A DNA stretch of 64,000 bases from Penicillus capitatus (taxonomy: Eukaryota; Plantae; Chlorophyta). A program made the position numbers and the translations under genes. A model generated the notes under the pieces. The model worked only from the letters and a program-made list of their open reading frames with translations, was not told where the DNA came from and did not search any database. Every line of letters starts with the position of its first letter. Position 1 is the stretch's first letter. Shown here one piece after another: positions 13,749 to 39,970 of this stretch. The DNA lies in the NCBI GenBank assembly GCA_965649825.1, contig OZ287701.1, forward strand, positions 485,101-549,100. The letters run 5' to 3'.

Positions 13749-14018
13749 TAGAGATCTATTAGATCTAGAAGTGGGAGTGTCCTGGGCCTTCTTGGAAGAC
13801 GTCGAAGTGCTGGGGGAATGATGAAGCTGTCACATCATTCCTCCTCTTCTGGCTCCTTCTTCACCGAGAGCAGTCCCTTCAGCTTCATAGCCAACGCCCG
13901 ATCGAGATCTGGACGCCTCTCATGTGTCACCTGAACACTCGAACGCCGTCACATCACTATCCTATGTAAGAGAGCGGGCAATCGGATTGAGTCTCAGAGC
14001 AGATCTTGATCGATCTCA

Positions 14019-14475
14019 TCAACGATGCGACAGCATCTCAACACTAGCATGAATTTTGACATCATCGACGGCAGACGCTCCCTCGTACCTTGAGGATATC
14101 TTCATAGCAGGTTTTGGCTGAGGTAAAAGGCACGATGTGTTCGATCGTGGCCGAACTGGGACGATGACTGTGTGGTTCAATTTCGATGACTTTGATCGTC
14201 CCTTCTTCATCTCCCATTGCCAAATCGAATGCCACGACATGACGCAGTCCTGTGCACAGGATGGCGTTCTATGTGTGGAGGAGGTCAGTATCTGCCGTAC
14301 CGGTGTAGCCTGCCACATGGAGGCCATAGAGGTTGCCGACTTCACTGCTCGCTTGAACGTGGCGATCGCCGCCAACCGACGTGATGCGACCTTTGATGTA
14401 TTTGCTGTTTTTCTGGACACATGACCAGACGAGTTCTGGCGAGGCGCACGGGAAATCAGAAATGTCTAAACCCAT
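14019..14475 (-). CDS. RPL28: Divergent ribosomal protein L28e-family protein
   Basis: ATG at 14475 gives MGLDISDFPCASPELVWSCVQKNSKYIKGRITSVGGDRHVQASSEVGNLYGLHVAGYTG/LRHVVAFDL..., matching the L28e N-terminal pattern (S-x-E-L-x-W-x-x-V-x-x-N...F-S-x-E-x-x-N-L...Y-S-G-L). One clear GT-AG intron. The 3' end is uncertain and the canonical C-terminal helix was not found. Confidence 0.55.
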
Positions 14476-14767
14476 CGTCGATACGGGCGATTCACCAACA
14501 GCCGCCGACACACGAACAGACGTCGCATCAAACATCCCGATCGATTGAACGAACATACACCCACCATGCATCGAACGTTCCGCGGAGCGAAGGTTGTCGC
14601 ACGGACAGCACGGCGATACACGTCCGAAACGTTTTCGAAAGTAAACAACCCGCTCCGATATCTTTCGTTCAACCGTCTCAGGTCCCTCCTTTCGTCCAAG
14701 AGGCCCCATCTTCGCCAATCGACCCTCCGACCGCGCACACTCTCGGGTATCGCACGCATCGGCACCG

Positions 14768-16797
14768 ATGAACGCTTCCAAGTGCATGATGGTGCAGAGA
14801 TGGCGGCACGGAAGAACCAAATCGCGAGCCGGTGCAGAAATGGCAGGCGATCGAGCGGGATCGTCGTGGACGATTTGGTACGACGTGGTCATCGGGACGT
14901 GGTCGATCGGGCGAAACACCGTTCGAAGAGGTTCGATCGACGCGATCGCTGTCATCGACCTTTCGATCGACGGGTCTGGCGTATCACGCATGGGAGAAAC
15001 GACTGGAGGAGAAGCCCCTTCCCGCGATGCCCATTCTCACTTCTCTGCGCCGAAAGAATGCCACGCAGCTATCGGTCGTCAACGATGACGTCATATCTAT
15101 TCTGAGAGATGTGACGACGCTCAGCGGGGCGTTCATGAGTATGTACTGCCGACATGGTAGCATGGAAGAGGCACAAAGCGTCCTCCATTCCCGCGCCATT
15201 TCTTGGATCGAGCAACTGTGCCTTCAACTGCGCGATGGCCGTTACGAATTTCCGATCGTTTCGCAGCTAGAGCCAAAGAGCATGGATCAACCCAAGTATG
15301 ATGGGACGTTGCACGAAGTGCCGCCGTGGTGGCACAAGACGATACCTGAGGCGATACGACTAACATTAGAGGCTGTGTTTGAGCCTCACTTTCTTAAAAG
15401 TGCCCACGGCTACCGTCCCGGTAAAGGATGCTACACAGCCCTGAAGGAAGTGAAGTATGGATTTGCTGGAGTGGATTACCTGATAGTCGGCGATCTGAGT
15501 CGCTGCTTAGAGACCTTTGATCAGACAATACTGCTCAATGCCATACGGGAACGCATCTCGGATCCCGCTTTTCTGAGACTTGTGGAGAAATGCTTGGCTC
15601 AAGACTATGTCGATCTGTCCGTCGTCGACTACAAGAATATCGGATTGCCGCAGCCGACGCTGTTGGGCCCCATTCTGTGCAATATCTATCTCCATGCACT
15701 GGATGTCTGGTTGCAAAATTGGTCTCAGTGTCTCAGCGTTGGCGGCGACGTGCGAGATGCCGCGGGGAATATCTATGCCGTCGTTGAGAATCGCAGGCGA
15801 TTCGGGATGACTCGTCTGGAAGATGCCAGGGCATGGAAATCGCCAACACTCCAAGGCATGACCCATGATGGGACAGCAGCTCCTTACGGATCGCATGAGA
15901 TGGCTGTGTAGGTGTGCGCTACGTCCGCTATGGGAATACGTTCTTGATCGGCGTCCACGGATCCGACAGCGATGTGGATCAGTTCGAAGTGGACCTCGCG
16001 CGCTTCATCAAGACGCGTCTCCATCTGTCATACAAGCAGTTTCAGTACAATCGTGCCTTGGCCACGTCTCCAGACAAGGAATACGTTGTCTTTCTGGGTG
16101 CCGAGGTGTACGTTGCCCCACAGATCTCTTCTCCGGGTCTGCATCCCGCATCCTCCGAGGCCGGGCAGTTACCCAACCGTCCGCGACTGTGCGTCCCAGC
16201 ACGGTTGTTGATGAAGAAGCTCGAAGAGAACGGTTTCGTCGAGACGGCGCGTAAACGGCCACGCTATTGTCATCGATTGGTCATGTGGGAATGTCATGAA
16301 ATCGTGAAGTACTATGACATCGTGATCAAGTTGTTCTGCATGTACTACACATTTGCAGACAACTATCACTGCTTGCTCCTTCTGTACGACGTCATGAAGC
16401 AATCATGCTCATTGACACTTGCCCGAAAATTGCGGCTCAAGCGCATGTGGCATGTGCATAAGCGATTGGAGAAAGATTTGATCGTGCGCGATATGGAAGG
16501 GGTGGCGCTCGCTTCCTTCGAACGTCCACGATTCGAGCGGCCGTTTGATCCATTCGTCGGTCGCGATGTGAATCCATTTGTCAGGTGTGAATCCATATGT
16601 CATCTTCTATCTATTCTCAGCAAAGAGTGTGTCTTTACCCCAATGATGTGATGGATGTGTTGTCTAGGATCGAACGCCCGTCCAGGCCGAAGTTCCCACC
16701 CGTCAAGCTAGGCGAAGCTTTTCACGAACCTCAGTTTCCCATGAGTAAAATGGAACGCTCCGTCCGTTCCAAGATTTTGGAAGGACAGCAGTCATAA
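14768..16797 (+). CDS. Nuclear-encoded group II intron maturase (nMAT-like): degenerate RT domain plus domain X
   Basis: RT motifs: EAIRLTLEAVFEPHFLKSAHGYRPGKGCYTAL, GDLSRCLETFD, GLPQPTLLGPILCNIYLHALDVW, and YVRYGNTFLIG (canonical YADD replaced by YGNT). Domain X: LCVPARLLMKKLEENGF...YYTFADNY...SCSLTLARKLRLK. Split by spliceosomal introns (~15856-15911 and 16585-16667); stop TAA at 16797. The N-terminus is R/S-rich and acid-poor. Confidence 0.9.
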
Positions 16798-17144
16798 CAA
16801 ACAACATAAGAAAGCATCATTTGACTTTTTCAAATGCGGAAAGCAAAGGCACATGGTTAGCTTTATCCGACAGTCCACGCCTATCATGTGTGCTTTATTG
16901 CAGATAGAGTGGCGGCCTCCGTTGCTGGGAAGGATGAAGAAAGGAAGGAATCAAGGAGTACACAGAAGGAGTAAGTCCGTATACGAGGCCAACAGTCAAG
17001 GATGAAGACGACAGATGTTCAGTAGATACACGTAGTAGTAGTAGTAGATTCATCTTTCAACTTGAAACAACGCATGGACGTGACTGGTAAGCTGATGAAA
17101 CGACGAGGCCATTCTCAAGAGTACTGTCATCCTTCTTCCTTTCT

Positions 17145-18596
17145 TCAAAGCAAGACTTTTCCCTCAAAGCTTGTCAACGCTATCGAAAATGCCTGGACCG
17201 TAGAAATAATAGATGGATTAAAGTCCATGATGAAAACATTGGTGTCCACCTGGGCATCACACACAGATGTCATTGCCAGGGCCCATCATGATGTGATGTG
17301 ACGTCTTGTTGGCTGTACCTTTCCGAACTGCATAACGACCTTACCAGCCCCATCCGAGTCACAGATCAGTTGGAAGTTCTTAACGGATGCGAGTTTCACA
17401 CGTCCTCTAAAATTCAGACACCAGCACTTGAGGCCTTCATTCCAGTGCGGCGGTTTATTGACGAGCTTCATGTTGCTGGAGTCCACACATTGCTGACGCG
17501 GTTCCACAGATTCCTTACACAAAACTACATCGCCCATCTCACTCTTTCATCCAAACACTCTCACTCTTAGACAGAACACACCTAGTGAAGATCGAGGAGA
17601 TATCGTCTCTGCTTCGGCTTCATCTCCTATGGGCCGATAAACTCGATGCCGATGACAGAGACGCTCCATCAGTTTTTGCCTGCGCTCCTGCTGGGCGTCA
17701 CCTCCACAGGGGAGAGAGTTATTCAATGGCTTGGGCAAAGACACATGTAACCTACACAGAGATATCCATCACACTTTTCTCTCTGTGCATCTCACTCTTT
17801 TTGACGTTTACCGTCTCGGACGCATCATCCCTTTCATTCGAAGCTTATACTTTACAGATGCAAGGGTCTCGTGTCGTGGTAAGTCCATCCCCACTTCTGA
17901 CCGGGAGAGAGCGCAGGAGAAGAAGGAGGGCTCGCATCTCGTCAGTTTATGACTGGTGCCCAGTACGTTCGATACCATCTTCGCACAAGGAAGTCCCGTT
18001 CCTTGATACGTCAAGAATATCGACGTATGCTGCCTACAGCACCCAGAGATGCCGATCGTCTCACGAGAGAGATGGCACCATGGATGCTGGGTAGCGGAGA
18101 GAAGGAATTTTGAATGTGTGGACGATGGGTCATTTCCCAAGAACAGGCGATAAAGTGTCGAGGTCCCTCTGAGCTTCCCTGTCTGGCTCTCTCGTACAAT
18201 GTAGCACTTAATCATCGCGCTTTCTGCTCGTGGACTGAGAGCAAAGAGCTGAGCGGGATGCGTCAGTGTCATGGGAGATGGTCCTTCCCAGAGATTTCGA
18301 AAAAGACGCGGGGCTGCGGCTTGTTTCCAACTCCGACAGACAGTGCTCATTGCGAAGAGAGACTGAACGGTTTGCCATCCCTGCGTGATATTCTCGAGAT
18401 TCTGCAAGATGAGGGCGACAAGCGATTCCGGCAATTCATTCCAAGGCGTCGAGGCGTCGTCGCCGTCTTCCTCGTTGTTGAGTGCGTCGCGGCGGAGAGA
18501 GGCTGTTCTGTGCGCAATGGGCGAAACGCGACGTCTTAGAAAACGTGGACGATCCTCCGAACGCACTGACGGACGCTGTCCTTCGGTTTCAACCAT
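17145..18596 (-). CDS. TLP: Tubby-like F-box protein
   Basis: N-terminal F-box ([18 protein letters not shown]...MSTVCRSWK) and C-terminal Tub domain ([33 protein letters not shown]...[16 protein letters not shown]...[14 protein letters not shown]). Confidence 0.93.
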
Positions 18597-18744
18597 TCGC
18601 TGAGTAGCACGACGCAAGGTGGCGCAAAAATGGGTGGAGCGAAAAGAATCGCGGTCGTGTCGTTCAGAATCTAAGCACAGATGAGCGACCGCGTCACAGG
18701 CAATCCACCGTCTGTTGAACGTACATACACTTCGAGTGCAGCAG

Positions 18745-20868
18745 CTATCCGTCGCATTCACTGGGAGCGGACGTCGCTGGAGGGGCGGCAGACGTCACAT
18801 CCGTCGTGGATGTGGGCACGTCGGCGAGGGGTGCCGAAGAAAAGACAGGGAAAGGAAGCATGGTTGGTGCGGCGCCATTCCAAGAGGTCCCTTGACGGCA
18901 CATGGGCAGTGATGTGACCCACGGAGGCGAAGAGCGCATGGCGGCGAGGAGATCGCTGTGCGAACGGCGATTGCCAGGTGGGCGGCCTGGGCGACCAGCG
19001 CCTCGACCGCGTCCTCGGCCACGTTTCGGCGGAGCCCTGGCTCCCTGAAACGCTGTCGACCGCATCGTCCTCTTCTCCGGCAGTTTTCTGCGTTTGGCAT
19101 CGAGGCCTCCCAGGACACAGAGGTGCCGTTCACGCTCAGCCAGTTCCATCTGCATGAACGCCCTCGTCACACGTGGTCGTCCGTTGGCGTTGATGTGACC
19201 TGTTGGTGCTTGGTAATATAGATATCGTCTGAGATATCTTCTTCGGAAGACCCCTCATCTGCCGACAGCTGCAGTGCCTGCATGACTTCCTGCGGCATCG
19301 TCGCGGAGGGATCCGTCTCTAAACTTTGCTTCAGCATCCGTTTGGCGTTCTCCCATTTCTCTGATTTGTCCGGTGTAATTTCGAGGATACTGGGAACAGT
19401 GATGTTCATCCGGGTCGGCTTCTCCACGCTTGCACTGGCGCCGAAGGATTCGCTGTGGTGCAGCGCGTGTTCAAAGTCACGGCGCGATCGCTTGGGTTCC
19501 AGAATCTCTGTCGAAGAGGCCGGCTTCTTCCGCAGAGAGCTGGTTTTTTGAATGGGTCGTGCTGTGGAGTACATCCTCGATTGACTGATCTGAAAGCACC
19601 CACCCACCTACCCGTGAGCAAAGGAGGATCGATGGCGAAGAGGGAGATGACTCGTTGGCGTGTGGACAGAAGGGCAGTAAGTCGCGTGAGTTCTTCGCCC
19701 AGGATTCCCAGACTGGCATGGAGACGACCAGGGTAGCACTCTTCGTCGCAGCTGTCCTCGGCGTCAGAATCCGATTCGAGTGGTGGCGGCTGGCGCCGCC
19801 GTTCGATCTCGGACATAAATTCTGGACGCGTCATTGGCGGCGCCGCCGTTCGATCCATTCCGTACTTTACCGTCTCTTCCTCGTCGTACGGCCGAGCAGC
19901 ATAGTGATCCAAATAAGAACGCAGCTCCCGCATGCGTAATTGCAACCACCTATCACACATCCATGACGTCACACACGCTCTCCCAAAAAGAGTGAGATCC
20001 TACACACTGCGCCGTTCCAGAATCTCCCGTTCATCCGTAGCCCGAAACGGTTGCGCCGCCTGCGTCAGCACCGCCGGCATCACCACAGGATCTTTCCACT
20101 CTTCATACCGCACGGCATCTTCGATGGCATCCTGTCAAAGAGTCCACGAACGGAGTGATGGAGTGGTCGAGAGAGAGAGAGAGAGAGGTCACACATTGAG
20201 GGTGTTCTGCATCTTCATGACGGATGGACATCCCTGCCCTCTCATGTCGCCCTCGGCATCCGTTTCCGAAAACGAACTGTACCCATCTCCTGCCATACTT
20301 CCATAGACCTCTCCCCCATCCTCCGCCATCTCTTCTTCCGCCTCTAACGGACTCTGCATCGCTCTGGGCGATTCAGGCGGGACAATGAGGAAAGGATTCA
20401 TGGGCGGCGTCAATTCCTTCTCTTCGAATTCTCGTGCTTCCTCTTCGGCAGCAGCAGCGGGACCCCCAGGATGCAAGAGATAGATCGCCTGGCGTCCCTC
20501 GACGTCCACCTCACGCAATCGCTCGTTGCCCTCTTTGTTGAGCGATACAGCAACGCGGTAGACCACACTCTTCTTGTCATTGAAGTACAGTGCGTTGCGC
20601 AGCATGAGATTGAAATCGGCGAGGAACGCCCCCCACGTGCGATACTGGCGCGTGTCGATTTTTTCGCGCATCATCGAAAAACACATTGGCTTCTCGATCA
20701 CCTGAACCCAAGATCGGCACCGTCAAGCGCAACCGTCAGGAAACATACCGACGAGTAGCCTGGCGCCTCGGCTTCCGTCACCGGCAGAGCGAAGTAGCCA
20801 AATCGATCGATCTGACACAGTCGATTAAGTATCCGATTGAGCACTTTGCCCGGTTCGAATTTGGACAT
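18745..20868 (-). CDS. Bromodomain protein with C-terminal PEHE-like motif and GRP/RG-rich tail
   Basis: Bromodomain: DRFGYFALPVTEAEAPGYSS/VIEKPMCFSMMREKI...FNLMLRNALYFN. Later exons give EEDISDDIYITKHQQ/...MELAERER, resembling the PEHE signature (EDLSD...RH...E..ER), followed by KRGRGRGRGAGRPGRPP. Confidence 0.8.
20169..20186. repeat. (GA)9 microsatellite within an intron of the bromodomain gene
   Basis: Perfect GA run read directly from the sequence. Confidence 0.9.
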
Positions 20869-21296
20869 CGTATCGACAAGCGAACGAACAAACAAACGCA
20901 CAAGCGCGCAGCAACGTCGACAAGACAAGCGGCGAAATGCAGACGGCACATTAAAAGGCACATTTGACGCACGTCACATCACGTCTGCATAACGCTCAAT
21001 TCCGAATGTCGGATTCTCTGGCGGCTTTGGTGGTGGTGATGAGAAGCAACAACTACTACACAGATAAAAAAGAATGATAGATAAGACCACCCTTGCTCAA
21101 ATTTTTTCCAGTTTTAAGAAGCATGTACGTGTGTGTATGTCTTACTCTCAAGGATTGTCCACATTCATTATCTCAGCCGTACACATCAGCAGCGGCAAAA
21201 AATAACCAACATTGCAACATAGTTAATATACAGACAGCAAGGACTTCGCTGTTCGGTGCGAGAAATGGTCAACGAGATCTCTGCGTTCTCGTTCTC

Positions 21297-24050
21297 TCAG
21301 AATTCAACCATCTGATTCTTTTTCCAGCCCAGATGAAGGAGATTCGGTTTACAGGCGATGTCCAGCATCGGCTTGGGGCCACACATCAAGACGAGACCAT
21401 CGTCTGAGGCCGAGTAGATTGATTGATTCAACATAGCTTGGTTGACAAATCCAGATGAATAGCTCCATTTGGCAGGCGGGGCATCTAACGTGTACCAGAT
21501 GTCAAAGTTGGCGTGTTGATGGGACAGCTCTTCAAGTTCTTTGTGGAGTAAGATGTCGTCAATCGATCGATTGGCATAAAGCAGCTTGATCTGCGTGGTA
21601 TCTGAAGGATCGCTCAGGACAGCTTTGATGATTTGATACATGGGTGTAATACCGGTACCTCCGGCGATCATTGAGAGCTGCTTTATCGTGCCTGGACGTC
21701 GATTCTTGATATACGTCCCTGTGCCAGTATAAGTAAAGTGTCCGATGGGGCCCTTGACATCCAAGGTGTCCCCGATCTTGAGCGTGTCCAAGTACTGTGA
21801 CATCTTGCCACCGTCCGGAAATTTGGGATGCACATGTGCGCGGTAGATCTTGACGACCAGGTCGAAATGACCCAGATCACTATCGGAGCTAGAAGGCGTG
21901 TAGGCTCTCATGCACGGCTCTCCACCAATATCTGCCACAAGAACAGATCATAAGCAGCAAAGCGGGGCGGTGTTTATCCACCTGCATAGATAAACATGTG
22001 TTGCCCAACGGGCAGTCCCAGTCGATGCTCTGGCGATGGCAGAGCAAATCGAAAGAGACGCGTGTCGTGGCTCAGCTCGATCTTTTCCGAAAGGGCAAAT
22101 GCCGTTTTCTTTTTGGGATTGAGCGCGACAAGTGCTCCTGCCGGGTCTTCTGTATCGTTCTTTGTCGGAATGGCATCGGATGGACCCGTCAGATCTCCAA
22201 TGTAGTAATTCTGTAGCAGTGCCTTGGCATTGGCAGAATGAATGGCGTTGAATTCGACGGTGGCGTCCGATCCTGCCTCGATCAGAATAGACTCGGCACC
22301 GCCAGGGTGATCCTCCAAGTAGGACGTCGCATCGTACACCTTTCCTTCGTGCACAAACCAACACGAGGCCTCTGTCCTGTGCTTGGCCACTTCCTCCATC
22401 GAAAATGTCTTCTTCGCTGAAACAGCATCCACATGGTTGGTGGTTGGGCATAGGCAGACATAGAGGTCAGGAGGTACCTGGCATCTCAAGGGGAACAGGA
22501 GGCAAGGCACTGGGAGCGGAATTCTCTCCATCCGCATTGGCCTCTTCCCTCCATCCCGTATTACCCAGAACGCCCATCTCTGTCGGCGCTGGATGTTGAA
22601 ATCTGAGGGCGATTTCGCCGTCCGTCTGTACGTGTTTGTGAATCCGAACTCTGAAATGACAGTTGTTCATCATTCCCATCACATTCCAAGTGATCTTATC
22701 CGGTTGGATGTTCTGGGATGAGTCTACCGCACGCACAAGGAGCTCCTCTGTTTTAAGGAAGTCCGAAACCTGCAGTTGCAATCGCCACATCACCCAGGTC
22801 CACGATTTCCCATAGCCGTTGTCCGAAGGCATCCGATCGATCTCGGCCTGACGCCACGTGGAGCCAGAATCGATAGAGACCTCCACTCGAATGACATAAC
22901 GGCCGCCACCCGTGTAAGCATAGCCCTTCACAGTGTACGGTTTGTCCCTCTTGAGACTCAAGGTCTCGTCATGCCACGGCCGAGCCACAGCCGAATTGAT
23001 ATTGAGCTCATTGATAATGTACTCTGGCTTGTACCACCATCCTAAAGGCAGATCTTATATACGATCGCATACGGTATGCTCAGCATGAGATACCCTCTTT
23101 CTCAGCCAGAGTCTCGTTGACATGAGGTGGCAGAACACGGTTGTCATGGTAGTGATAGAAATTCGTGCTTTCGTTGTTTGTCACAGTTATTTCGCTAAGC
23201 CATTTGACCATGCGCCCACCGATGAATCCAGGAATGATCATTCGGACGGGGAAGCCGTGATCGGGTGTCAGCCAACGGCCGTTCTGCTTGTAGGCCAAGA
23301 GAACGTCGTTGGATGGGTCCATGGCATGACCCAACGTCAGTGATGTACCGTAAGAACCGTCATCGCCTTTCGGCAACTCACCCTTCGGTCCGCGGAAGCA
23401 CACATAGTTTGCTCCCTCTCTTGGACCTTTTGTCCCCACGTGTCTCAGAATATCACTCAGTCGCACACCTAAGTCACTCAAACGTCAAATCATCTCACTC
23501 TTTTGCGCGGTGTTTACCGGTCCAGTAAGAACAGGAGGTGGCGGTGGGACCCCAGTTAAACCCAATCGACTTTTTGATCGTGTTCTCTTCTTTGCGTCGG
23601 TTGCCGGCGCAGGTGACTGTGACAGGGACAGTCACACTTTCGAATTGAATGATCTCATCCATCGTGAGTGACATGGGACGATCGACAAGTCCCGTGATCT
23701 CAACGCGATGACTTTTCCAATCCAATTTTGGCACGGCGCCGTGATTGCGCACGAGATGCAGCGAGACCGGCGTGACGAATCCCGCCTTCATGAGTAGGTC
23801 CATTGGCGGCTCGCAGTTGAGGGGATGACGTCCCGTCAGACGCAGAATCGCAGGATGGCGTGGAATCCAGCTATCCGGTGTGCCGACATCTTTCGCGTCA
23901 ATCTCGTGCGCGGGGAGGTGAAGGTCCCACGCGTCAGAGCTCTTGTCCAGCTCTATAGCACAGACGGTCGAACGAAGCCGGTCGTCATTGCGTCGTCGTA
24001 CGTTTTTCGACTGGAGCACCGAGTGCCGCGTGGGCGAGGGTGGCAGCCAT
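21297..24050 (-). CDS. NIA: Assimilatory nitrate reductase [NAD(P)H]
   Basis: Mo-cofactor domain (RLTGRHPLNCEPP, LVRNHGAVP, CAGNRRKE, PDHGFPVRMIIPGFIGGRMVKWL), dimerisation domain (WNVMGMMNNC), cytochrome b5 (HPGG), FAD domain (HRLGLPVGQH, RAYTP) and NAD domain (MIAGGTGITP, MCGP). ATG at 24050 followed by a 67-nt intron. Confidence 0.98.
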
Positions 24051-24121: not shown

Positions 24122-27100
24122 ATGGGTCGCAGTAAGCGTACAGTCGCTCGAAGAATACCACATGGTGGGTGCAGTGCATAAGGATGCATCTCAGAAAGGG
24201 TTAACTGATGGAAGGGACCTACAGAAGGGGGTAATACGGGCGCGATCACGATGGGACGTCTGGAGATCGACGCATTGCCGGGAATTGCTTTCCCAAGATC
24301 GCAATCGATGCCTTTAATGCCTTGCATTATGTATTAATGGGGATTGACTGGAGTCGTTGGCGTGACAGTGATCGACTGGCGCGATGGCAGGTCGTGGTCG
24401 CGGATTAGAAATGACAAAACCTGCGTGGATGACTGGTAAGGTCGAGGGAGATGGATGTGTCTGTGCTTCAATCCTGCCTCATGCATTGCAGAGCGCGACG
24501 GAGCAAATCTGGGCGCCGGAGCACAGACCCATGCCGTAGACACCTTCCTTTCTTCGTTCCTATCGTGCCACGATGTTGTGACTCTTCAGGTCGCTGCGGC
24601 GCCACACATCGTGGCAGGTGTGAGGCGAAAGGGCGAGAGCGTCGGAAGTGACGTTTGTTGTAGGTGCGGCTTTGCGTCAGGAATCGGATTGGTCAGAGCA
24701 CACAGCGGCAGACGGGCGTAAGTACTACTATAATCGCCGTACACGTGAGTCCCGATGGGAGAAGCCGAATGAAGAGCTCTCCCAAGAAGACCAGGAAGAG
24801 GAGGCGCAGAACTGGAAGGAATTTACGGCGGCTGATGGTCGAAAGTATTACTATAACAAAGTGACGAAGAAATCGAAATGGACGCTGCCTGAAGAGATTC
24901 TCAAAGCCAAAGCAGCTCTGGCTGTCAATGAACCGAAATCGGCGGCTCCAGTTCAAGTCGTGAAGCTATCGGAAAAACGGAAAGAGCGTGCGTCGGCGCA
25001 TCAGCCATCATCCGCCGCAAAGAGCGTCAGTGTCAAAAATGATTCCGCTGCCGAACGATCTCAGAATGAAGGAAAGAAAGTGTTCAAAGCGCTCTTGACG
25101 GCGGTGCATTGCAAACCGGGATGGACATGGGATCAAGTGATGCGTGCCACGGTGCACGATGCACGTTACGGAGCATTGAGTACGTTAGCCGAGAAGAAAT
25201 CGTGCTTTGAAGAGTATCTGGATGAGATGGAGCGCAAGAGAGAGGAGGAGGAGTTAGAACGAGACAGAGTCCATCGCGATGGTCTGATCGCTCTGTTAGA
25301 CGAGCATCCCGAGATCAACTACACCACAAGGTGAGATCTGTACGAAAGAGTAACCGATGGCAGTGTGACGGAGAGACGATGTGTGATGGAAAGGTATCAC
25401 AAGGCCAAAGAGATGATTGGAGAGGATCCCAGATGGACGGCAATGGACGAGGCCTACCGCGAAACCGTCTATCTGCGATTTCTAAAAGAGAAGCGCGATC
25501 GGATGCGAGAGGCCCGACGAGAGCATCGTGATGATAACATCCGAGCTTTCAAGCAGCTGCTCATGAAATACAAAGTCAAGGTAGGTGGCGTGTCTTCTCT
25601 GTGTGTTGGTGATGATAGAGAGGGAGTGGGTGCTAGATGACAACTCCCTATCGCAGAGCCTGTCACAAGCTTCAGGGATTGGATGATTACGAAGCGCTGG
25701 ATCGATTGGATCGACTGGAGGTGTACGAATCGTACATTCGTGAATTGGAGAAAGAATACTATGACCAAGCGGAGACAGTCGAGGCACAGGAGAAGCGACA
25801 GGCTCGCAAGAACCGAGATGCCTTCAAAGAGCTCATCCAACAGCATGTCCAGGACGGTCGTGTCAGTGCCAAGATGCGGTGAGATGAATGTCTGATGTGA
25901 CGTTTGTGTGAAAGAGTGAGGGATGGGTGTGTTTAGATGGAAAGAGTTTTATGCGATGGTGGCAAAGGATCCAGCTTACTTGGCTGTAGAAGGGAATAAA
26001 TTTGGCTCAAGGCCTCGTGAGCTGTTTGAAGATACCATCGAGAAGCTGGAGGAGGATTACGACAAAGACAGGGCGTTGATGAAAGAAGTGTATCGCGGCT
26101 CGACCATTGTCGTCACCACTTCCACCAAATTTGAAGAATTCAAGAGCGCGATGGAAGCAGAGGACGAGAGAATGAAAGAGGCATCGGAACAGAACGTGTA
26201 AGGTTCCCCGCAGGGACAGGGCTAAAGGGCGAGACATGGAATCGGATGTCTAGACGGATTATCTACAGCGAGCTGTTTGCAAAAGCAACAGAGAAGGAAG
26301 AAAGAGAACGACGGCGCAGGAAGAAGGCAAAGGAAGATTTTGCGGCACTTCTCAAGAAGAGCGGCCAAGTGACGGATGCCATGACATGGGAAGAGGCAAA
26401 GGAACTCTGTTCAGACCGCATCGACCCCAAGGTCTGTCGATCTTGTTGCGCCTGAGCCTGATCCACGTGCCTTCTTTGCAGTATGAGGCTGAATGCAAGG
26501 AGGCGTTGCAGGAATACCAGAAGAAGCAACGCAAGAAGGAAGAGCGGCGAAAGAAAAGAGTGAGAGATTATAAGCGTAAGAGACGGTGGATGGACATTGT
26601 GTGCAGGGGAATTTGCCTGGGAGTTCTTCTGGGGATGAAGTGCGCCCCTCGCGCTCGCACAGAAAGCGACACGGCAGTAGTAACTCAGATACAGATGTGC
26701 GAGAAAGACCGATTCGATCCGGAAAGTAAGCAGCTTTTCTCGCTGTGTGGGGTGATCTATGTCCGATTCCTGTTGGCAAAGGTATCGTTCCGATGAAGAC
26801 GTCAATCTGGAACGCGAGGCCAAGAGGTCCAAAAAAGAGAGACACAAAGAGAGGAAACGGCATAACGAGAAGAAATACAAACACGATGGCCATCGCAAAA
26901 AGTGAGAACCGAAGAGTGATGGATGCGACAGGCAGGGAATATTCGAATGGATCGCAGGCCCCGAACAAGACGATCGCGTTCCAGGACCCGTTCGCCGTCC
27001 AGCAGACCGTCTCAACAAGAGGAACCGCGTCCAGCCGAACGTGCCAAAGAACATCCAGAGAGGCATCCGCAGAAGGAGATGACCGGACGCGGTAACATCT

Positions 27101-28484: not shown

Positions 28485-31400
28485 ATGTATCGTTTGTCGC
28501 TATTTCTCTGTTGCCTTCTGGCGCTTCTGGTCTTGAGCTTTGGTCAGACCAGGCAACGTTCGCAAGTGACTTTTGGAAGGACGGACCGTTCGACCTCATG
28601 CACTATCGAGATGGTGGGAACGAAAGCAACACGGAGACGGGAAGCCACGATTACGGCACGTGTTGTCTGTGATGAGAGGACACTCTATGACCAAGAGCTT
28701 CCCCTTACGGAGCTCGACGAAACGCCACTCGATCACGTTAGCGCACGAAATGCTCGTCGGATGGTCTCATGTTGGGAATGGTTAGGGGATCCGTCTGTTC
28801 GCAGAGACATCCTTCGGAATGGCTTACGTGTACATGGGAGAAGAGACCGATGCCAATTTGGTCGGATCACTCTTTCGACGTCTTCCAGAATTTGGATCCG
28901 GTGAAATGGCTGCGCCACTGGTGATCACAGATGCGAATCTCGACATCACGAACGTTACATTCATGAACAATCAAGCCGCTTATCGAAGCGGAGCCATGAT
29001 CGTGTCCGGATCATCCAACGTCGATTTGCTCAATGTACGATCACATAGCACTGCACGAGAGATGAAGCGTGTGCGATCTGTAGTGTATCTTTTCTGGCAA
29101 CGTCGGAGAAGAAGGGGCATTACATGTGACGGAATCTGCACGCGTCGATGTGGACGTCTCGTACTTTGAGTTGAACAATGGTACGGAAGTGGGTGCGATC
29201 AAGATCGACGGTCGATCTGTGGCCAGTGTGTCCGAGTGTGCGTTTCGTGCCGATTACGGATCGGAGATGGCCAATGAGATATATGTGACGGACGATGCCA
29301 CCGCCATCATCGATGAGAGTTCGATCGATGGAGAAGACGCAGGATCGGATTTCGATGCATTTCTAAAAGATCCCAGTCGACCCGAGAGCGACGCTGAGAA
29401 CTTCGCACTTCCGATCGCCGCCATCGCCGCCGTCAGCGGGAAATCGACCGTTCTCTTCTCCGATTCCTCCGTCGGTGGACACGTCGGTCGTTTTGGAGCG
29501 ATCTACGTTACAGGCGCACCAGTTTTTCAAGCACTGAGGACAGAATTCTCGGGAAATCGGGGCGTAACGGGCGGCGGTCTGTTTGTGAATTCGCAAAGAG
29601 CAGGCTATGCTCGAGTGATGGAATGCACCTTTAAGGGCAACACAGCACGCAATGGCGGCGGTCTCGTCTTCGCAGGTATCTTTCTCAATGCCGATTCGTC
29701 GACCATAACTCAGCAACTTCTGTCGCGTCAGGCAACGGCACCTACGTCATTGACGAGTGCACCTTCAAGAACAACACAGCTCTGAATGGAGGTGCCGTGT
29801 GGGGAGACTATTCCGAAGATAACGGATGTCCCAGAGGATCGGCCGGATCAAGAATTACCATACAGGATAGCACGTGCGTTCTCCAAAACCTAACCGTTTC
29901 TATTCTCACCCCATCACACAGATTCGCGCAGAATATGGCGATCCAGAGTGGCGGTGCATTTTTTATTCGATGTACCGATATCTACGCAGAGGACTCCGTG
30001 TTCCGCCAGAACAGAGCAATGGATGGCGACGGTGGATTCGTCAACGCAGGCAGTACCTTTGATCTCCGATTCAGTGGCTGCGATTTCGATCAGAACACAG
30101 CAAGTGAGCAGCTCGTTTTTAGACTGGTGTGTTTTCTTAACTGAGTGCAACAGGTGGCAACGGCGGTGCGATTTATGTGGAGGACATGCATGATATCGTG
30201 TCTGACGCTTGCACATGGACAGGCAACAGAGCTGGTCGCAATGGCGGTGCGATTGCTTCGATTAACGGCAATGAGATTCTGTTTAAGAATTCGGAACTGC
30301 GTAAGAGTTTCAGTGGAAAACACGGAGGCGGTGTTTTCGGATCCAATCTCAAGAGAATCAAGTTTCGAGACACATCTACGGAACGGAACGAGGCGGGAGG
30401 TCGCGGTGGGGTTATTTCTGGATCCAATGTGTCGGAGTTTCGATGGCGCGATGTTATCGCCAAGATGAACCGGGCGGCGATCGCGGCGGCGATCGATATC
30501 AACGGTGGCGATCTTTTTGAAGTGAAGCAAATGCAGTTTCCAGATCACAAGGCGACGACCGGAGACGCTGGTGCTATTCAGCTGAACGGCGTGCAGAATA
30601 TTACGATCAGAGATGTGGATTTCTTGCAGAACGAGGCTGCCAAATCGTGCGGCGCGTTTTCGATCCGCCGAGCGACGAATGTGATCATCTCCGACGCGTT
30701 AGTGGAAGCGAACGTCGGTAAGAGAGGTGGTGCTGTCTGTTTGGATGACGTCGATCGCGTCGATCTGTCGTCGATTCGATTCGACTCGAACATCGCCGAA
30801 AACGGAGATGGAGGTGCACTCTACGCGAATGCATCCCGATCCGTTTCATTAAGTGACGTCGTTTTCATAAACAATAATGCCAGCAGATCGGGAGGCGCTC
30901 TATCGATTGCCGATGCCGGAGATGTCGAAATGATGGGATGTTTTGTCGAGTCGAATCGAGCCAACGATGGCGATGGTGGGGCGATCAACTTGAACGGAGG
31001 CCAGTCTCTGTCGATGACAAACGTCACGCTTCTCGAGAACGAAGCCAGCGAATCGGGCGGCGCCTTGTCGCTTGCCGATGCCGGAGATGTCGAAATGATG
31101 GGATGCGTCATCGAATCGAATCGAGCCAACGATGGCGATGGTGGGGCGATCAACTTGAAAGGAGGCCAGTCTCTGTCGCTGACAAATATCACACTTATCG
31201 AGAACAAAGCCGTCGGATCGGGAGGTGCCTTGTCGATTGCTGATGCCGGAGATGTCGGAATGATCGGATGCGTCATCGAATCGAATCGAGCCAGCAATGG
31301 CGATGGCGGCGCGTTTCATTTCAATAGAGGTCAGTCTCTGTCGATGACAAACGTCACGCTTCTCGAGAACGAAGCCAGCGAATCGGGCGGCGCCTTGTCG

Positions 31401-32466
31401 CTTGCCGATGCCGGAGATGTCGAAATGATAGGATGTTTTGTCGAGTCGAATCGAGCCAACGATGGCGATGGTGGGGCGATCAACTTGAAAGGAGGCCAGT
31501 CTCTGTCGATGACAAACATCACGCTTCTCAAGAATAACGCCAGTGGATCGGGTGGTTCTGTGGCATTGACAAATTTAGGATCAGCTTCTTTGGAGGAGAC
31601 GAAGGTCATGAACTCGACAGCGCCTTTCTCTGCCGGCGGCCTCTTGGCCGACAATGTCGCCAAAATGACACTGAACGGATCGTCCTTTTCACGATGTGTT
31701 TCGCGCGATGGTGGAGCTGCCTACTTTAAAGGCTTTTCTGAAATCGAAGGCCAAAACATATCCTTTGAACTCAACTCAGCCGAAAACGGAGGAGGCGCGT
31801 TTCTCTGCAGACGTAAGCCACTTCGATTGACAACATTCGATCACTAATCGGAATGCGTAGAGCAAACGAAGGTGGACCTGAAAGGGAGCCATTTCTATCA
31901 CAACGCAGCTCGCGATGGATCGACCCTCAATGCAGACTGCAATTGTCAAGTGGATATTCAAGATTCCGAGATCTATCGAGATGAAGATCGACCGAATAAT
32001 GGAGATTTCTTCAAGACCAATCGATACTGTAGCAGCGTCTCTACTTTGGGAAACAATTTCTTTGGCCGTCCCGAGAACACCGACACGGAATGGTATGAAT
32101 GGTTGGCGATTATCGGCGGTGCAGTCCTCGGCTTCCTTCTCCTGTCCCTTTGCTTTTGCCTTTGGCGACGACGAAGGGCTGCCACTAAAGGAACTAAGCG
32201 AATGAAATCGGACATTGAAAGTCAAGCCGATGCAAAGGTGCAGCAAACACAGCACTAGAATTGACATAGATGACTAAAAGGGGATGGTACAGGGCGAAGA
32301 TGGAGAGAGTGAGGAAGATGCAAGTGATGAAGAAGAGGACAGCGATGAAGAGTACGAAACTGATGATGGGGATACGAGGTAAGCTCTTCTCGTGTCGCAC
32401 TCTTTTTACGAGATCTTATGTTTTAGTTCGGATGGAGATGAAGATGAACGCCGAAGAAGAGAATGA
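28485..32466 (+). CDS. Type I membrane protein with Pmp-like (GGA / FxxN) right-handed beta-helix ectodomain
   Basis: Signal peptide MYRLSLFLCCLLALLVLSFG. Dozens of F/VxxN...GGA[I/L/V] motifs (ORFs 29126-29785 and 30177-31847). A single TM helix (WLAIIGGAVLGFLLLSLCFCLW-RRRR) and an acidic cytoplasmic tail (GEDGESEEDASDEEEDSDEE...). Multiple GT-AG introns. Confidence 0.85.
30891..31550 (+). repeat. Coding tandem repeat, 4 x 165 bp (55 aa)
   Basis: Unit GGALS[I/L]ADAGDVEMMGCxxESNRANDGDGGAINLxGGQSLSMTNVTLLENEASES starts at 30891, 31056, 31221 and 31386. Confidence 0.95.
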
Positions 32467-34009: not shown

Positions 34010-37000
34010 ATGAAACACACATTTCTCTACGCATGCATGTGGTTTCTGGTTCAAGGACCTCATCGGTCCGCTGGTATCCGCGGTGCGTTGCGCGATCGTC
34101 CCACGTTAACCACTCAAACTGAGCTATCCTATCAGATGTGGACACCCTTAGCCTATCGAGCTCCTTTATCCAGCACGAAACTACGGTACGCTCTCCGCTG
34201 TTCGGCACCGGATAACTGTGCTGACTGACTATTCGAACAGTATGGCGATAAACAGCTGACGGGTGAGGCTCTCCCTTGCCTAACCAGCGCAGCGAGGGCG
34301 TCTCGTTTGGACGGGGAACACGGTGTCGGTATCCCAAGCAACAAGGCAGAATCGCTAATTGCGGTACGAGAATCGTAGCACTGAAGCGATCGTACGAGGT
34401 TTGCTTCGTAAAGGACGCGAGTCCTGTGTTGAGAAAGAGATTTCCGTACGCATGCAGCCTGAGAAGAGACGGCAGCGAAGAACATGTCTGTGGTGGCGTC
34501 CTTGTCGATGAACGATGGGTCCTGACGGCGGCACACTGTCTATGGAACAAAGCGAAGAACGGACTCGGCCACAACGCCCTTGTCCATTGCAGCATCGACG
34601 CGATCGACACGGACGATCCAGCAAGCGTAAGGAGAACTGCAACAACAGATACATAACACAAACGCTCAGCTGTACCGTTGCAGTTTTATAGGTCGACGCG
34701 AGCATACTGGCCGCGAGAGTGGGATGGCGATTTCGAGCATGGATACGACGTCGGATTGGTGCGGTTGGACAGAAGACTTCCTCTCGAGAGACCACGGGTT
34801 GACAGAACGGAACACCGACTTCGGACGAACGATCTCCTGATAGCGGCAGTCTGGGGCTCGCAGGAGGAAAACAGCACTGCGAGTGCGCCGCAGTCAGCTG
34901 CGAAGTTTCCTTTCCTTTCCGTGAGTCCATGCGAAGAGAAATTCGAAACGAGACTCGAAGACTCCGTGATTTGCGCCGAGTCCGTCGGCAGAAACTCCTG
35001 TCGGGGTGGGCGATCGTCTGTCAGACTGTTTCGCGCCTTCCGTTGCTTTCGTGTCCTTAGGTGATTCAGGCTGGCCGTTGCTGATACCGCACGTACCTAA
35101 GGGTAACATTGCTCAGGGAAGTCCACATCGCGACCTTCTCATCGGAATCTCGTCGCTTTGCCCCGATGCGCGTCATGCGGAAACGCTTTCCATATACACG
35201 CGTGTGTCCGCTTTCTGGGAGTGGATTGACCAAACGATAAGAACAGAAACAGAGGTAAGCTGCCACCTTCGCTGGACCTCCCTTGCGTTCTCGCGTTCGC
35301 GCCCGCCTTCCGTTTTTCGCACTGTCGGGCGATCGACACAAACTGACCCGTCGCCATCCGCGTCGTTTTGATGGACTATTCGGTCACGTGCAAGAGATTG
35401 ATTGATCTCTTGTCTCGTGATCATAGATATCGGGCTGTCTTAACGGGAAGAAGAAGGAAGACCTCGCGGCGTCGCATGAGAGAAACGAAAAAACACTGCG
35501 AGGACGGCGACGCTGGGTAAAACGGCGACGAGAAAGCTCCCCCGTTCATAGATTAGTGTCGACAGGATGTGATGAGATCTGTCCGAAAGGAAGAAAGCTG
35601 GAAGGACAGAGATGCCATCGACGACGGGCTCTTGCCGAGTGCAACGTCCGATGACGACCTAAGACAAAAATCCCTCTTGCGTGGCTCGTCAATGCTTCAT
35701 CGGACAACGGTTTTCGACGCGGTAGACAGTATCGAGGTAATTCTCGTTGCAGAGCAATTCGAGAGATAATTTGGCGTGCATAAACAGTCGCATACCAATA
35801 GCGAGACGAACGACGTCGCCGTCGACAAGCAGGGGAAATCTCCATTGCATGTTCAAACCGAGAGGCTCGACGACGCGTTGGAAGCTGCAGAGGTAATTAT
35901 ACCCATGTGTGTCTTATCTAATAGTGTATTTGCCACAAGGCGCTCCTCGATCACGGGGGTGACATCAATGTTGCCGATGTTGATGGTGGCTATCCGTTGC
36001 ACCTTGCCGCTCGCCAAGGACATCTACAGATCATGAAGGCGAGTGTCGATTCCATTCGCACACCTATCTCTAAGAGCAACGAGTAGTTGCTGATATCTGC
36101 CGGCGCGGATATCAATGCAAGAGCAGCCAACAGAGATACACCGTTGCATGAGGCTGTCGCTAACAGGCACGATGCCGTCGTGGAGGTAAAACCGATTTCT
36201 TGCTGCGCAAAATATTCAACATCCAAACAGATGCTTCTGCTGAGAGGGGCAGATGTCAACGCTGTCGGGGAGAACGGTTGGACAGCGCTTCATCACGCTG
36301 CCCGTGCTGGACTTCTGGAGATCGCTGCAGTAAACGCTCTTCGAATCACCTTTTATGTATCGATGCGCATCGTTGGCAGGCGCTCCTCAATCATGAAGCC
36401 AAGGTCGACATTGCTTCGCATGACGGCTGGACTCCGCTTCACTATGCAACCCGTTACGGATTCGAGTATCTTACCAAAGTGACTGAATACTGATCTGCGA
36501 TTTCCTGCGCTCAAGATGCCTCACAGGAATTTCTTAAATATGGAGCCGATGCTAATGCCGCTAATGGCGAAAGGTGGACGCCGCTTCACATGGCGTCGCG
36601 ATATGGACACTCCCAGATCGTCAGAGTAAAACTCGCAATCTGTTCCAAGGTTCTGCTCTGGATGGATATGCACTTGCAGGTTCTTCTCGATAAAGGGGTA
36701 GATGTCTCTGTCGGCAACGGCAAAGGATGGACAGCACTTCACATTGCGTCACGTCGTGGCTATGTCGAAATTGTTCAGGTATAAACGCCTCACTCTCCTA
36801 AGTCCTCCGCTGAATCGATGTATCATTTCAGCAACTCTTAGACAATGGGGCGGCTGTTGACGCCGTCAATGACGAAGAATGGACTGCTCTGCACGAGGCA
36901 TCCCGTCATGGACACGACGATATCGTCAGAGTAAACCTCAGACCTTCTAACAACGCTCTCCAATGTAGAGCACACCCACGTGCTCGCAGATTCTCCTTGA

Positions 37001-37575
37001 TCACGGGGCGGAAGTAAACGCTGTTGATAACAAAGGATGGAATGCTCTTCACAGGGCCTCTCGTCATGGACACAATGAGATCGTTACCGTAAACACAAGA
37101 ACGCATGACGTTTCTACCTCGGCGTTCTTCTGTTTGCAGGAACTCGTCGTTCACCAGGCGGATGTCTCTAGTACCAATGGCAAGGGTTGGACGGCTCTGC
37201 ACATGGCATCGCGTCACGGACACACCAAGAGCGTCAGAGTGCACACCACGTCTACTTCGAATCGCAGTGACTGATGAGATGTGAATGTGCAGAACCTTCT
37301 TGATCACGGGGCAGACGTTCAGGCTGTTGAAGAAGATGGCTGGACACCGCTTCACTTGGCATCTCACGCTGGACATTTTCGCATTGCCAAAGTAAACTCG
37401 CGTAACACGCATAGCGTATGGCGAAATTGCAGTTTAGGATCTTGTCGTTTTCGGGGCCTTCAAGGAAAGCCGCACGAAAACTGGAGAGAATCCGTTGGGT
37501 CTCGTTTGCACGACATCGCACTGTCATTGTTCAAGCGAGATTCATTCGGCGCTTGAAGAACTATTGACGCCATAA
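34010..37575 (+). CDS. Secreted trypsin-like (S1) serine protease fused to an ankyrin-repeat array
   Basis: Signal-like [16 protein letters not shown]. Protease motifs: RFPYACSL...[49 protein letters not shown]. Two linker exons follow, then one 105-nt and ten 99-nt ankyrin exons (35940-37391), and a terminal exon 37438-37575 ending ...SALEELLTP*. Confidence 0.88.
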
Positions 37576-38339
37576 ACCTCTGTTTCTTATAATTTGTTCT
37601 TTATCCATTGCATTTGCGGTTTCTCCCCTTTGTTTTTTATTCAAAACCCCTTATGTGGCACTAACAACTTCTGCAGTTGGCTTTGATTGGTATAGCTCAT
37701 AAACCGTATTTATCATTTTATTGACAGGCATTGGACCCATTCCTTTTAAGGTTGTTTTCAATTAACGACGAGAAATGAGACTTCTCAAAGTCACAGATGT
37801 CATTTGACAGATCTGCATTGTAAGAGAAGTCTCTTTGTGGTGAATCGAACAGCCGTTTATCGGTTTAGGACCTCAATCATGCAGCCGGGCGTATGTCATT
37901 GAGACTTCGGAGAAGGAATTCAAAAATAAGAGAGATCACGCGATACAGGGTTACTAATCGTTGAGCACATCTTGTCTTCCTCGATACGCTGTGCAGATCA
38001 CTAACTACAAATCGACTCAACTCATAATCGTCACAGAAGAAACGGTTAAACGCTTGTGACTTGGCATCGCTGCTTTGTCACGTGTCGTCAGATAGTTATC
38101 GCCGGCATGATCCAGCATCGCAAAATCGGCACGTCGGATTAAATATGACGAACTGTGCATTCGAAGTCAAGATCAATCGACCGATGTTCTTGAAAAATCA
38201 CACCAAATGCCGCGATCAAGTGAGTCAGTTCAGTTCGAATATACCGAACTTCCGTTTAAATCGGGCATCCTCGATCGTTTAATTTTCAGCCGTCCAAGTG
38301 TATAAAGGCACCGGACCGTTCGATTTTAGCGTCCGTACA

Positions 38340-39970
38340 ATGCCGGAGTCTTTCGAACTTTTAAAAGAAGAATGGATTCATCCGCAAGGCGTCCAAGACG
38401 GAACGTTTCGTCTGGCGCCAATCGACGTCTACTCTCTCAACACTTTCGTCTTTATTTCGTGGCCATTTTTCTTCGACTACGATGTGGATGCTGAACACTT
38501 AAAAGAGGCTCTAGAAAAGCTGTCCGTCAAGTATCCAATCCTCTGTGGCAGAGTGGTGCCAGACGTCGATACACGTTACCGCATTGAAGTGCGGAAACAC
38601 CGTCGCCTTTCGAAGACACCCAATAACAGTGATATTCCATGCAGGTCAATTCCGAAAACGCTCAGGCGTTCGGCTTCCCTTTCTTCGAGATGCAAGCGGA
38701 CATGACCATCGCATCCGCCATTCTGACCTATGGCAAGATAACAGCCCCTCATGCCAATTTCCCTGTGTGCCCAGAGATGCCTTTCTTCATGGAAGCTGTA
38801 GACAGCAAAGCCATGCTGAGGTACATTGTCTACTGTCATCCACGATCAAAAGCTAACTGTGTCCTCTAGTGGAGAGAAGGCTCCGGTCGCAGCACGATTG
38901 ACGCATTTCAAGGACGGCTGTGCGGTGACCCTCCTCATTTCTCACATGCTGATGGACGGGCAGCGACTCATCGAGCTGTACCGTGACCTCGGAAGGGCGT
39001 ACCGCGGCGAGGAGATTCCCGACAGATGCCACGACCGTTCCTACATGTGGCCAGATCAGCTGGCCAAGTACTTCACTTTCCTGGGCGACGATATTGCGCA
39101 GTTTCCACGTAAAGTGCTGCCAGAAGCAGAAATGCCATCCTTTGCTCATTTTCAAGACGATTCGTTTTGCCTAGAAGCTCTGTACTTCTCCAAGGTTGTT
39201 CGTCATCTGTCACATCATATCATTCGAAGAGTGTCTTGCAGGAAACGTTGGCAGACATGAAAGCAATGGTGAAGCCGATCTTGGAGGAAGGCCAGTTCGT
39301 CTCATCCAACGATGTCCTCGTCGCCTTCAATTGGATGCTTTCAACCGAAATTCGAAAAAAGCGAACTCGGCCCGTTGTCAGCGGTTCAGATCTCGAAATC
39401 TCGAACACCATGACGCTTACAATAATTGAGTATTTGAAGAACGGCTCCGGTTTTTTTCCGGAGAACTACTGCGGAAATGGCTACGGGTATCGAACGCCGT
39501 CTTTGGAAAGCCTCGATCTCGAAGGAAAGTCTCTTGGAGCGACTTTCGCGGAACTCTCTCTGATAATACGCAAAAGTGTGACAGATTTCAGGACGCAACC
39601 ACAAATTCAGGCAAAGTCAGCGTTGGCGCATTATCTAATTGCTTCGACTGGAGAGTCTGTGATGGACTTTACCGCGTTGAGAGGAGGCGTGACGAACATG
39701 GTGAAGATGCCTACGGCAGAAATCGACTTCGGCGGCGGGTCGCCAAAGATGGCGTACATTGTCGGACCTGCTCCCTATCCTGGAGTTGAGTATGGTGCAG
39801 CAGCACCTGGACCGGGTAAAAGAGATGGGATCATGTTTCATTTGCAAACAACTGAGAAACAGAGCCGCAGGATCAAGACCTCTAGCGTCGTGCGCGAATG
39901 CGCCCCGGGAATGAAGCTGCTTTTCAGCGATTTTTCCGAAGACGAGTTGCACGCGTTGCTCGACATGTGA
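38340..39970 (+). CDS. BAHD/HXXXD-type acyltransferase (Transferase family)
   Basis: LKEALEKLSVKYPILCGRV, catalytic SHMLMDG (HXXXD), VSSNDVLVAFNW, NYCGNG, and C-terminal IDFGGG (DFGWG variant). Three short introns. Confidence 0.9.

Follow-up and report, generated by a model that had tools for sequence, protein, structure and literature searches.

Two ankyrin genes with one repeat per exon in a 64-kb stretch of the green alga Penicillus capitatus

We analysed 64,000 nucleotides (nt) of DNA from the green alga Penicillus capitatus (NCBI GenBank assembly GCA_965649825.1, contig OZ287701.1, positions 485,101 to 549,100 of the forward strand) and describe two ankyrin (ANK) genes whose coding sequences are divided almost throughout into one repeat per exon. 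This whole stretch is referred to below as the window, and coordinates are counted from its first letter unless stated otherwise. Gene 1 lies on the plus strand at 35572-37575; its model was built by reading outwards from an array of 99-nt exons and has 13 exons, with 1398 nt of coding sequence for 465 amino acids. Gene 2, which was absent from the preliminary description of this DNA, was found on the minus strand by a tblastn scan with one repeat, and its model (62245-59136) has 18 exons that encode 698 amino acids. All splice sites of both genes were placed from the sequence, and both 5' ends are provisional.

Two genes built of 99-nt exons

The exons of gene 1 are as follows.

35572-35736 (+): exon 1, from a provisional ATG; N-terminal cap with a half-repeat at its end, from frame analysis
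35788-35892 (+): exon 2, 105 nt, phase 0-0; degenerate ankyrin unit
35940-36038 (+): exon 3, 99-nt ankyrin unit, followed by a GC-AG intron
36087-36185 (+): exon 4, 99-nt ankyrin unit
36231-36329 (+): exon 5, 99-nt ankyrin unit
36380-36478 (+): exon 6, 99-nt ankyrin unit
36527-36625 (+): exon 7, 99-nt ankyrin unit
36680-36778 (+): exon 8, 99-nt ankyrin unit
36832-36930 (+): exon 9, 99-nt ankyrin unit
36990-37088 (+): exon 10, 99-nt ankyrin unit; with exon 9 the most similar pair of the gene (70% DNA identity)
37140-37238 (+): exon 11, 99-nt ankyrin unit
37293-37391 (+): exon 12, 99-nt ankyrin unit
37438-37575 (+): last exon, C-terminal cap repeat ending in SALEELLTP and a TAA stop

The preliminary description had listed ten exons of 99 nt, each encoding a single ankyrin unit, and this is confirmed: all ten intervals are exactly 99 nt in length, are open in frame 1 and encode one unit of 33 amino acids. 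AG stands before every one of them and GT after it, except at 36039, where the donor is GC, and the spacers between successive exons measure 48, 45, 50, 48, 54, 53, 59, 51 and 54 nt. To estimate how often such a chain would arise by chance, we used the density in the window of 99-nt open reading frames (ORFs) flanked by AG and by GT or GC, which is 0.004 per base. A chain of ten such ORFs with spacers of 45-59 nt is expected approximately 2e-9 times per window, which excludes a chance origin.

All 12 introns of gene 1 are in phase 0, lie at the equivalent position of the repeat and are 45-59 nt in length, in agreement with the phase-0 introns of 45-60 nt described before. Retention of an intron would introduce a stop codon or a frameshift in 9 of the 12 cases. 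The gene had been taken to span 35788-37575; its end coincides with the end of our last exon, but its start lies further upstream, at the provisional ATG at 35572, which is preceded by an in-frame stop 8 codons away.

The exons of gene 2 are given in the order of transcription.

61847-62245 (-): exon 1, with a provisional start and an uncertain 5' end; N-terminal region ending in a half-repeat (GSTLLHWAAAFNARRSVE)
60628-61773 (-): exons 2-8, seven 99-nt ankyrin exons (61773-61675, 61477-61379, 61326-61228, 61174-61076, 61021-60923, 60874-60776 and 60726-60628), with introns of 48-54 nt, one intron of 197 nt and one GC donor
60493-60579 (-): exon 9, shortened ankyrin unit of 87 nt that keeps phase 0-0
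60446-60348 and 60298-60200 (-): exons 10 and 11, two 99-nt ankyrin exons
60150-60061 (90 nt) and 60017-59919 (99 nt) (-): exons 12 and 13, one long repeat with a 30-amino-acid insertion
59775-59873 (-): exon 14, 99-nt ankyrin exon
59722-59624, 59571-59473 and 59420-59322 (-): exons 15, 16 and 17, 99 nt each, in modules that span 59322-59774
59136-59270 (-): last exon, C-terminal cap ending in SKLEDLLAP and a stop

Fourteen exons of gene 2 are exactly 99 nt in length, one is 87 nt and one long repeat is split into 90 and 99 nt. The introns measure 43-54 nt, except for one of 73 nt and one of 197 nt, and 16 of the 17 occupy the repeat position that is used in gene 1. The only one at a non-canonical position (intron b12; 43 nt, boundary provisional) separates exons 12 and 13. 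Across both genes, 24 exons are exactly 99 nt, and the other exons of the arrays (105, 87 and 90 nt) are also multiples of three. GC-AG ends occur in 2 of the 29 introns, at 36039 (GCGAGT) and at 60922 (GCGACA); at both sites, it is by taking GC as the donor that the 99-nt exon and the register of the repeat are preserved.

Position of the introns in the ankyrin fold

Pfam assigned the spliced product of gene 1 to Ank (E = 5e-92, ten stretches) and Ank_2 (E = 5e-86), and that of gene 2 to Ank (E = 2e-113, 12 stretches). Both products consist of units of approximately 33 residues that carry the G-x-TPLH-xA and GADVN motifs of the ankyrin repeat (PF00023/PF12796), and no family other than ANK scored above the Pfam cut-off in either of them. 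The best matches among solved structures were the membrane-binding (repeat) domain of ankyrin-1/2, NOMPC (E = 1e-110) and DARPins (E = 7e-97).

One Pfam Ank stretch, at residues 305-335, covers profile positions 3-33, and an exon boundary falls after residue 321. The intron site thus lies between profile positions 19 and 20, in ...IVK/xLL... (the slash marks the intron), which we take to be the middle of the second ankyrin helix. In total, 28 of the 29 introns of the two genes are found at this equivalent position of the repeat, and all 29 are in phase 0. The preliminary description had proposed that any 99-nt exon could be lost, duplicated or swapped without a shift of frame. The arithmetic of this proposal is sound; moreover, because all of the exon boundaries are equivalent, the removal or addition of a unit would still yield a regular repeat.

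A Trp precedes the T-x-L-H motif in eight of the ten gene 1 repeats. This residue is presumably a contact position that is normally variable, located on the usual ligand-binding groove, and the fixed row of aromatic residues suggests one conserved binding mode rather than a variable surface. Neither product has an N-terminal signal-like hydrophobic stretch or a membrane segment that is evident by eye, so both are probably cytosolic.

Age of the units and relationship of the two genes

The repeat units are highly diverged. Tandem Repeats Finder reported no tandem repeat at 35000-38000 because the units are too dissimilar, and pairwise DNA identity between units ranges from 28 to 70%, with maxima of 70% for A09/A10 in gene 1 and 69% for B15/B16 in gene 2. 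Identity at codon positions 1, 2 and 3 is 0.57, 0.67 and 0.37 in gene 1 and 0.50, 0.61 and 0.33 in gene 2, compared with 0.25 for random sequence; this pattern is that of coding sequence under purifying selection. Synonymous divergence (dS), estimated by the Nei-Gojobori method (NG86), is undefined or saturated for 14 of 45 unit pairs in gene 1 and 31 of 78 pairs in gene 2, with a median of 1.5-1.8 elsewhere. As dS is close to saturation and identity does not exceed 70%, most of the unit duplications are ancient. Positional entropy is high on the concave and back faces alike, as in any ANK protein.

Single comparisons show homology between the end exons of gene 1 and those of gene 2 (last exons, E = 1e-8; first exons, E = 6e-6), with exon 1 of gene 1 corresponding to the end of exon 1 of gene 2. 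Between these ends, gene 1 has 11 internal repeat units and gene 2 has 16, and units of one gene are approximately 48% identical to those of the other. Given the homology of their first and last exons, the genes are paralogues, with conserved end exons and unlike numbers of internal units.

Origin of the arrays

Direct traces of how the arrays grew are found at the 3' end of gene 2. A 52-nt intron and a 99-nt exon here form a module of exactly 151 nt that occurs three times in succession, and the introns b15, b16 and b17 are homologous, as judged by alignment and by gapped scores that exceed those of shuffled sequences (z = 3.8-6.8). These homologous introns accompany exons B16, B17 and the last exon, respectively. 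In addition, B15 and B16 share an identical run of 31 nt (permutation P = 1e-5; in the whole set of 253 exon pairs, the second-longest run measures 14 nt), which indicates a later conversion or partial duplication. No mutual similarity was detected among the remaining 26 introns, as would be expected of old neutral sequence.

On this basis, we propose that both arrays grew as a module of approximately 150 nt was duplicated in tandem, the module comprising a 99-nt exon and an intron of about 50 nt, such that each copy would have inherited a phase-0 intron at the identical point of the repeat. Most duplications are ancient, and the copies have since drifted apart while purifying selection maintained the ankyrin fold; later events have left traces at the 3' end of gene 2, in its homologous introns and its short conversion-like tract. 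The products are predicted from their fold to be long solenoids of approximately 12 and 17 repeats that serve as protein-binding scaffolds. Introns as short as these are spliced by intron definition, in which intron retention is favoured over exon skipping. Splicing of the 43-59-nt introns would therefore be expected to include all exons as a rule, and exon skipping would be rare.

Three points weigh against this account. Homology between introns can be recognized in just 3 of the 29, and for the other 26 the shared position is the sole argument. All splice sites, including those of the 43-nt intron b12, and both 5' ends are predictions from sequence. Finally, as regards a scaffold function, we found no orthologue with a known role, and protein matches are at most 43% identical. 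We nevertheless consider it likely that the window encodes two ankyrin-only paralogues, with arrays that arose by old duplication of exon-plus-intron modules and products that are scaffold-type solenoids. Within this account, module duplication as the origin of the arrays is well supported.

Genomic neighbourhood

The genes and ORFs that we recognized around the arrays are listed by position.

~3428-6914 (+): GT48 1,3-beta-glucan (callose-type) synthase, in several large exons
14832-16651 (+): two adjacent ORFs in different frames, matching RVT_1 and Intron_maturas2
17808-18761 (-): ORF with F-box and Tubby domains
20189-20701 (-): bromodomain ORF
~21300-23905 (-): assimilatory nitrate reductase (Oxidored_molyb, Mo-co_dimer, Cyt-b5, FAD_binding_6 and NAD_binding_1)
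24648-25334 (+): ORF with WW and FF domains
30177-32240 (+): large right-handed beta-helix / Chlamydia-PMP-repeat protein; a single segment (AIIGGAVLGFLLLSLCFCLW) that probably spans the membrane comes next, together with an acidic tail
34010-35255 (+): trypsin-like serine protease, directly upstream of gene 1
38298-39970 (+): acyltransferase, just downstream of gene 1

The protease has a signal-like N terminus, several short introns and recognizable His (WVLTAAHC) and Ser (GDSGWP) motifs. Because it lies on the same strand as gene 1 and only 316 nt away, we considered whether gene 1 could be its C-terminal part, joined by an in-frame intron of 310 nt with a donor at 35256 and an acceptor ending at 35565. 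The last recognizable protease exon does end in phase 0 at GTAAGC, and from an acceptor AG at 35564-35565 the frame would run on as DVMRSV.... However, all of the other introns that we modelled are 43-61 nt in length, save the two of 73 and 197 nt in gene 2, and the trypsin domain is complete at ...WI, from which the ORF can run on to a stop at approximately 35371. Furthermore, the N terminus of the protease is hydrophobic and signal-like, and secretion would be uncommon for an ankyrin array; gene 2 bears the same N-terminal cap without any protease. A fusion is accordingly very unlikely in our view, and the protease is probably a separate gene.

On the other side of gene 1, the acyltransferase has a weak match to the Pfam 'Transferase family' and belongs to a family with at least 4 copies (70-86% identity) on the 724-kb metagenome contig that matches the window (see below). 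The nitrate reductase has four introns of 49-61 nt, one of which starts with GTAAACAC and therefore has a GTAAAC donor. Its introns are similar in size to those of the ankyrin genes but much sparser, at about one per 400-600 nt compared with one per 99 nt. The preliminary description had pointed to similar GTAAAC and GTAAAA donors in the array; since the unrelated nitrate reductase gene also uses GTAAAC, this donor is not peculiar to the array and is no mark of kinship between its introns. In the Mo-co dimer domain of the nitrate reductase, named relatives that are 43-51% identical include Closterium, a Chlorella cluster, a glaucophyte, fungi and Rapaza.

Relatives of the glucan synthase (54-70% identity) were found only in metagenome and Logan assemblies, and a word-indexed search gave no named homologue. 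A 254-amino-acid ORF of this gene is identical to a gene call on contig ctg340429_39x_l (723,813 bp) of the metagenome assembly ERZ25074695; by arithmetic from the glucan synthase coordinates, the window corresponds to approximately positions 554,949-618,948 of that contig. The gene calls on the metagenome record are fragmentary and split the glucan synthase, which fits the earlier remark that a track of ORFs conceals the ankyrin array. The same contig also carries a CFA20 gene, presumably a sign of a flagellum, and a SufBD gene, which we take to represent plastid-type Fe-S assembly. Together with the nitrate reductase of the window, these two genes indicate an alga that is probably a flagellate. 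The ORFs with F-box and Tubby, bromodomain, and WW and FF domains represent common nuclear genes of eukaryotes and confirm that the window is nuclear DNA. Amid this otherwise nuclear-looking DNA, the RVT_1 and Intron_maturas2 ORFs might have been inserted from an organelle, or might belong to a nuclear maturase-like gene that contains an intron or has undergone a frameshift. An Rfam scan of the window was empty overall and thus detected no group II intron RNA.

Further afield, a retrotransposon polyprotein (RVT_1, Integrase_H2C2 and rve) is encoded approximately 65 kb upstream of the window on the same metagenome contig (at ~490 kb; 20169-21110 of the stretch examined there). A stretch of a related contig, ctg332023_28x_l of ERZ25074695, contains an NLR-like gene for a protein of 1361 amino acids with NB-ARC and TPR_12 domains. 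This gene is a single uninterrupted ORF (12926-17011 of that stretch, minus strand) and lacks introns, unlike the intron-dense ankyrin genes.

Exon exchange and other explanations

The preliminary description had interpreted the array as a substrate for ongoing combinatorial diversification of a binding surface, in which exons are skipped, duplicated or exchanged, during evolution or by alternative splicing, to vary recognition, as has been proposed for brown-algal receptors of the LRR and TPR types. Several observations agree with such a role. Exons of equal length, with symmetric phase-0 boundaries at one structural point, could be gained or lost in frame while the solenoid remains regular; modules have been duplicated and one conversion-like tract is present; and the paralogues have unequal numbers of units. 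For B15 and B16, nonsynonymous divergence (dN) is 0.43 and dS is 0.32, although over just 33 codons, and the NB-ARC-TPR gene on the related contig from the same sample shows that NLR-like genes occur in that related genome.

Most of the evidence, however, points the other way. Divergence between the units is deep, dS is near saturation, and we found no near-identical exons or paralogues. Pfam detected no signalling domain, or indeed any domain besides ANK, in either product. We also found no relic or antisense repeat exons: no ANK units were detected outside the modelled exons by tblastn, the short introns cannot hold such exons, and neither the 197-nt intron, the length of which equals 49 + 99 + 49, nor the 73-nt intron contains an ANK motif of a decayed exon in a six-frame reading. 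The conserved Trp at a contact position in gene 1 and the disfavouring of exon skipping by intron definition, the expected mode for introns of 43-59 nt, are further points against a diversity generator, and the NB-ARC-TPR gene itself is intronless. Ankyrin genes with 99-nt exons, for which a genome-wide census had been suggested, numbered just two in the approximately 125 kb of the metagenome contig that was examined. The data thus support neither ongoing diversification in the manner of the brown-algal receptors nor a parallel with immune receptors, and we regard the former as very unlikely.

A narrower version would do without receptor domains and posit an ankyrin-only family in which interchangeable 99-nt exons are gained, lost, converted or skipped, so that the recognition surface varies. 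If this were true, the family would be the counterpart of the LRR and TPR cassette receptors proposed for brown algae, and its footprints would be the module duplications and the conversion tract seen at the 3' end of gene 2. We consider this version very doubtful too.

The introns could also have been gained independently in each repeat after the array had formed, at a recurring proto-splice site or through an introner-like element. Most of the introns are indeed mutually dissimilar, and a repeated sequence could in principle present the same target site each time. However, the position and phase are identical in 28 of the 29 introns, and the probability that twelve independent insertions hit the same one of 99 positions is approximately (1/99)^11. 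The exon ends show no consistent MAG/R proto-splice motif, and neighbouring genes are approximately five-fold poorer in introns. No copies of the introns were found elsewhere in the approximately 190 kb searched, which makes an introner-type origin unlikely, and the youngest modules show joint duplication of exon and intron. Independent gain is hence extremely improbable. The same is true of a decayed or unexpressed pseudogene array that has a splice structure but no function: although the prokaryote-style ORF-fragment calls of the metagenome record do not recognize the array, all 31 exons are open, all 29 introns have GT-AG or GC-AG ends, and divergence is far greater at third codon positions than at the other two.

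Significance

With tandem duplication of exon-plus-intron modules as the preferred explanation, the locus would be an unusually clean natural record of solenoid growth, in which 28 of 29 introns mark the seams of a duplicated module. As the youngest modules keep recognizable copies of their introns amid intron-poor neighbours, it offers a useful case for teaching and for benchmarking studies of repeat-gene evolution. Exon-per-repeat genes of this type are missed entirely by gene finders and by prokaryote-style ORF calls. The locus would matter much more if exon content were to vary between cells, strains or transcripts.

Comparison with known systems

When the gene 1 product was used as a protein query, all matches were generic ANK proteins that are at most 43% identical; they included neither an orthologue nor an entry for the spliced product itself. 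Two near matches are not of the exon-per-repeat type: the Halyomorpha 'ankyrin-3' locus is intronless, and a Scytosiphon ANK gene encodes 742 amino acids in 2322 nt. A scan of JGI metagenomes gave one unrelated match (38%). A synteny walk through the glucan synthase and the downstream acyltransferase, which covered approximately 100 kb of the same and related contigs, found no ANK array, although in the related contigs the sequence covered was not on the side of the glucan synthase where an array would be sought.

Animal ankyrin genes such as ANK1 encode 24 repeats in exons of 99 and 198 bp. Compared with these, the introns described here are tiny (43-59 nt) and other genes of the host are intron-poor; the products consist of repeats only, without spectrin-binding or death domains; and sequence identity is merely at the generic ANK level. 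In their regular, consensus-like repeats of 33 residues, which stack into a long solenoid, the products resemble DARPins and the ankyrin spring of NOMPC. The position before T-x-L-H that is occupied by Trp in eight of the ten gene 1 repeats is one of those randomized in DARPin libraries.

Exon-per-repeat shuffling has been described for the ROCO-LRR and NB-ARC-TPR families of Ectocarpus (Zambounis et al. 2012, PMC3341825; brown-algal ROCO follow-up, PMC11378527). From the former study, we took as points of comparison a constant-length, phase-0 exon per repeat, ROC-COR or NB-ARC modules, inactivated or reverse-strand exons in introns, unsaturated dS, and positive selection on contact residues. 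The Penicillus genes share the first of these features: one repeat per exon of constant length, a multiple of three and in phase 0, so that the number of units can change in frame. They differ in the others that we could compare. The repeats are ANK rather than LRR or TPR, and neither product has a ROC-COR GTPase or an NB-ARC module. The introns hold no inactivated or reverse-strand repeat exons, for which they leave no room at about 50 nt, and recently duplicated loci with differences confined to the repeats are absent; divergence between exons is near saturation instead of low.

A closer parallel is provided by class 2 of the repeat genes defined by Street et al. (2006, J Mol Biol 360:258), as summarized in PMC4585158 and PMC3995336, in which all exons are multiples of the repeat unit and derive from local duplication of intron/exon modules. 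Judged by these summaries, both Penicillus genes match the class in exon length and in intron position and phase, and gene 2 also in the presence of homologous introns that accompany homologous exons (b15-b17); they fit this exon-equals-repeat class on every feature compared. We conclude that this pair of ankyrin genes most likely grew by a route already known for repeat genes.

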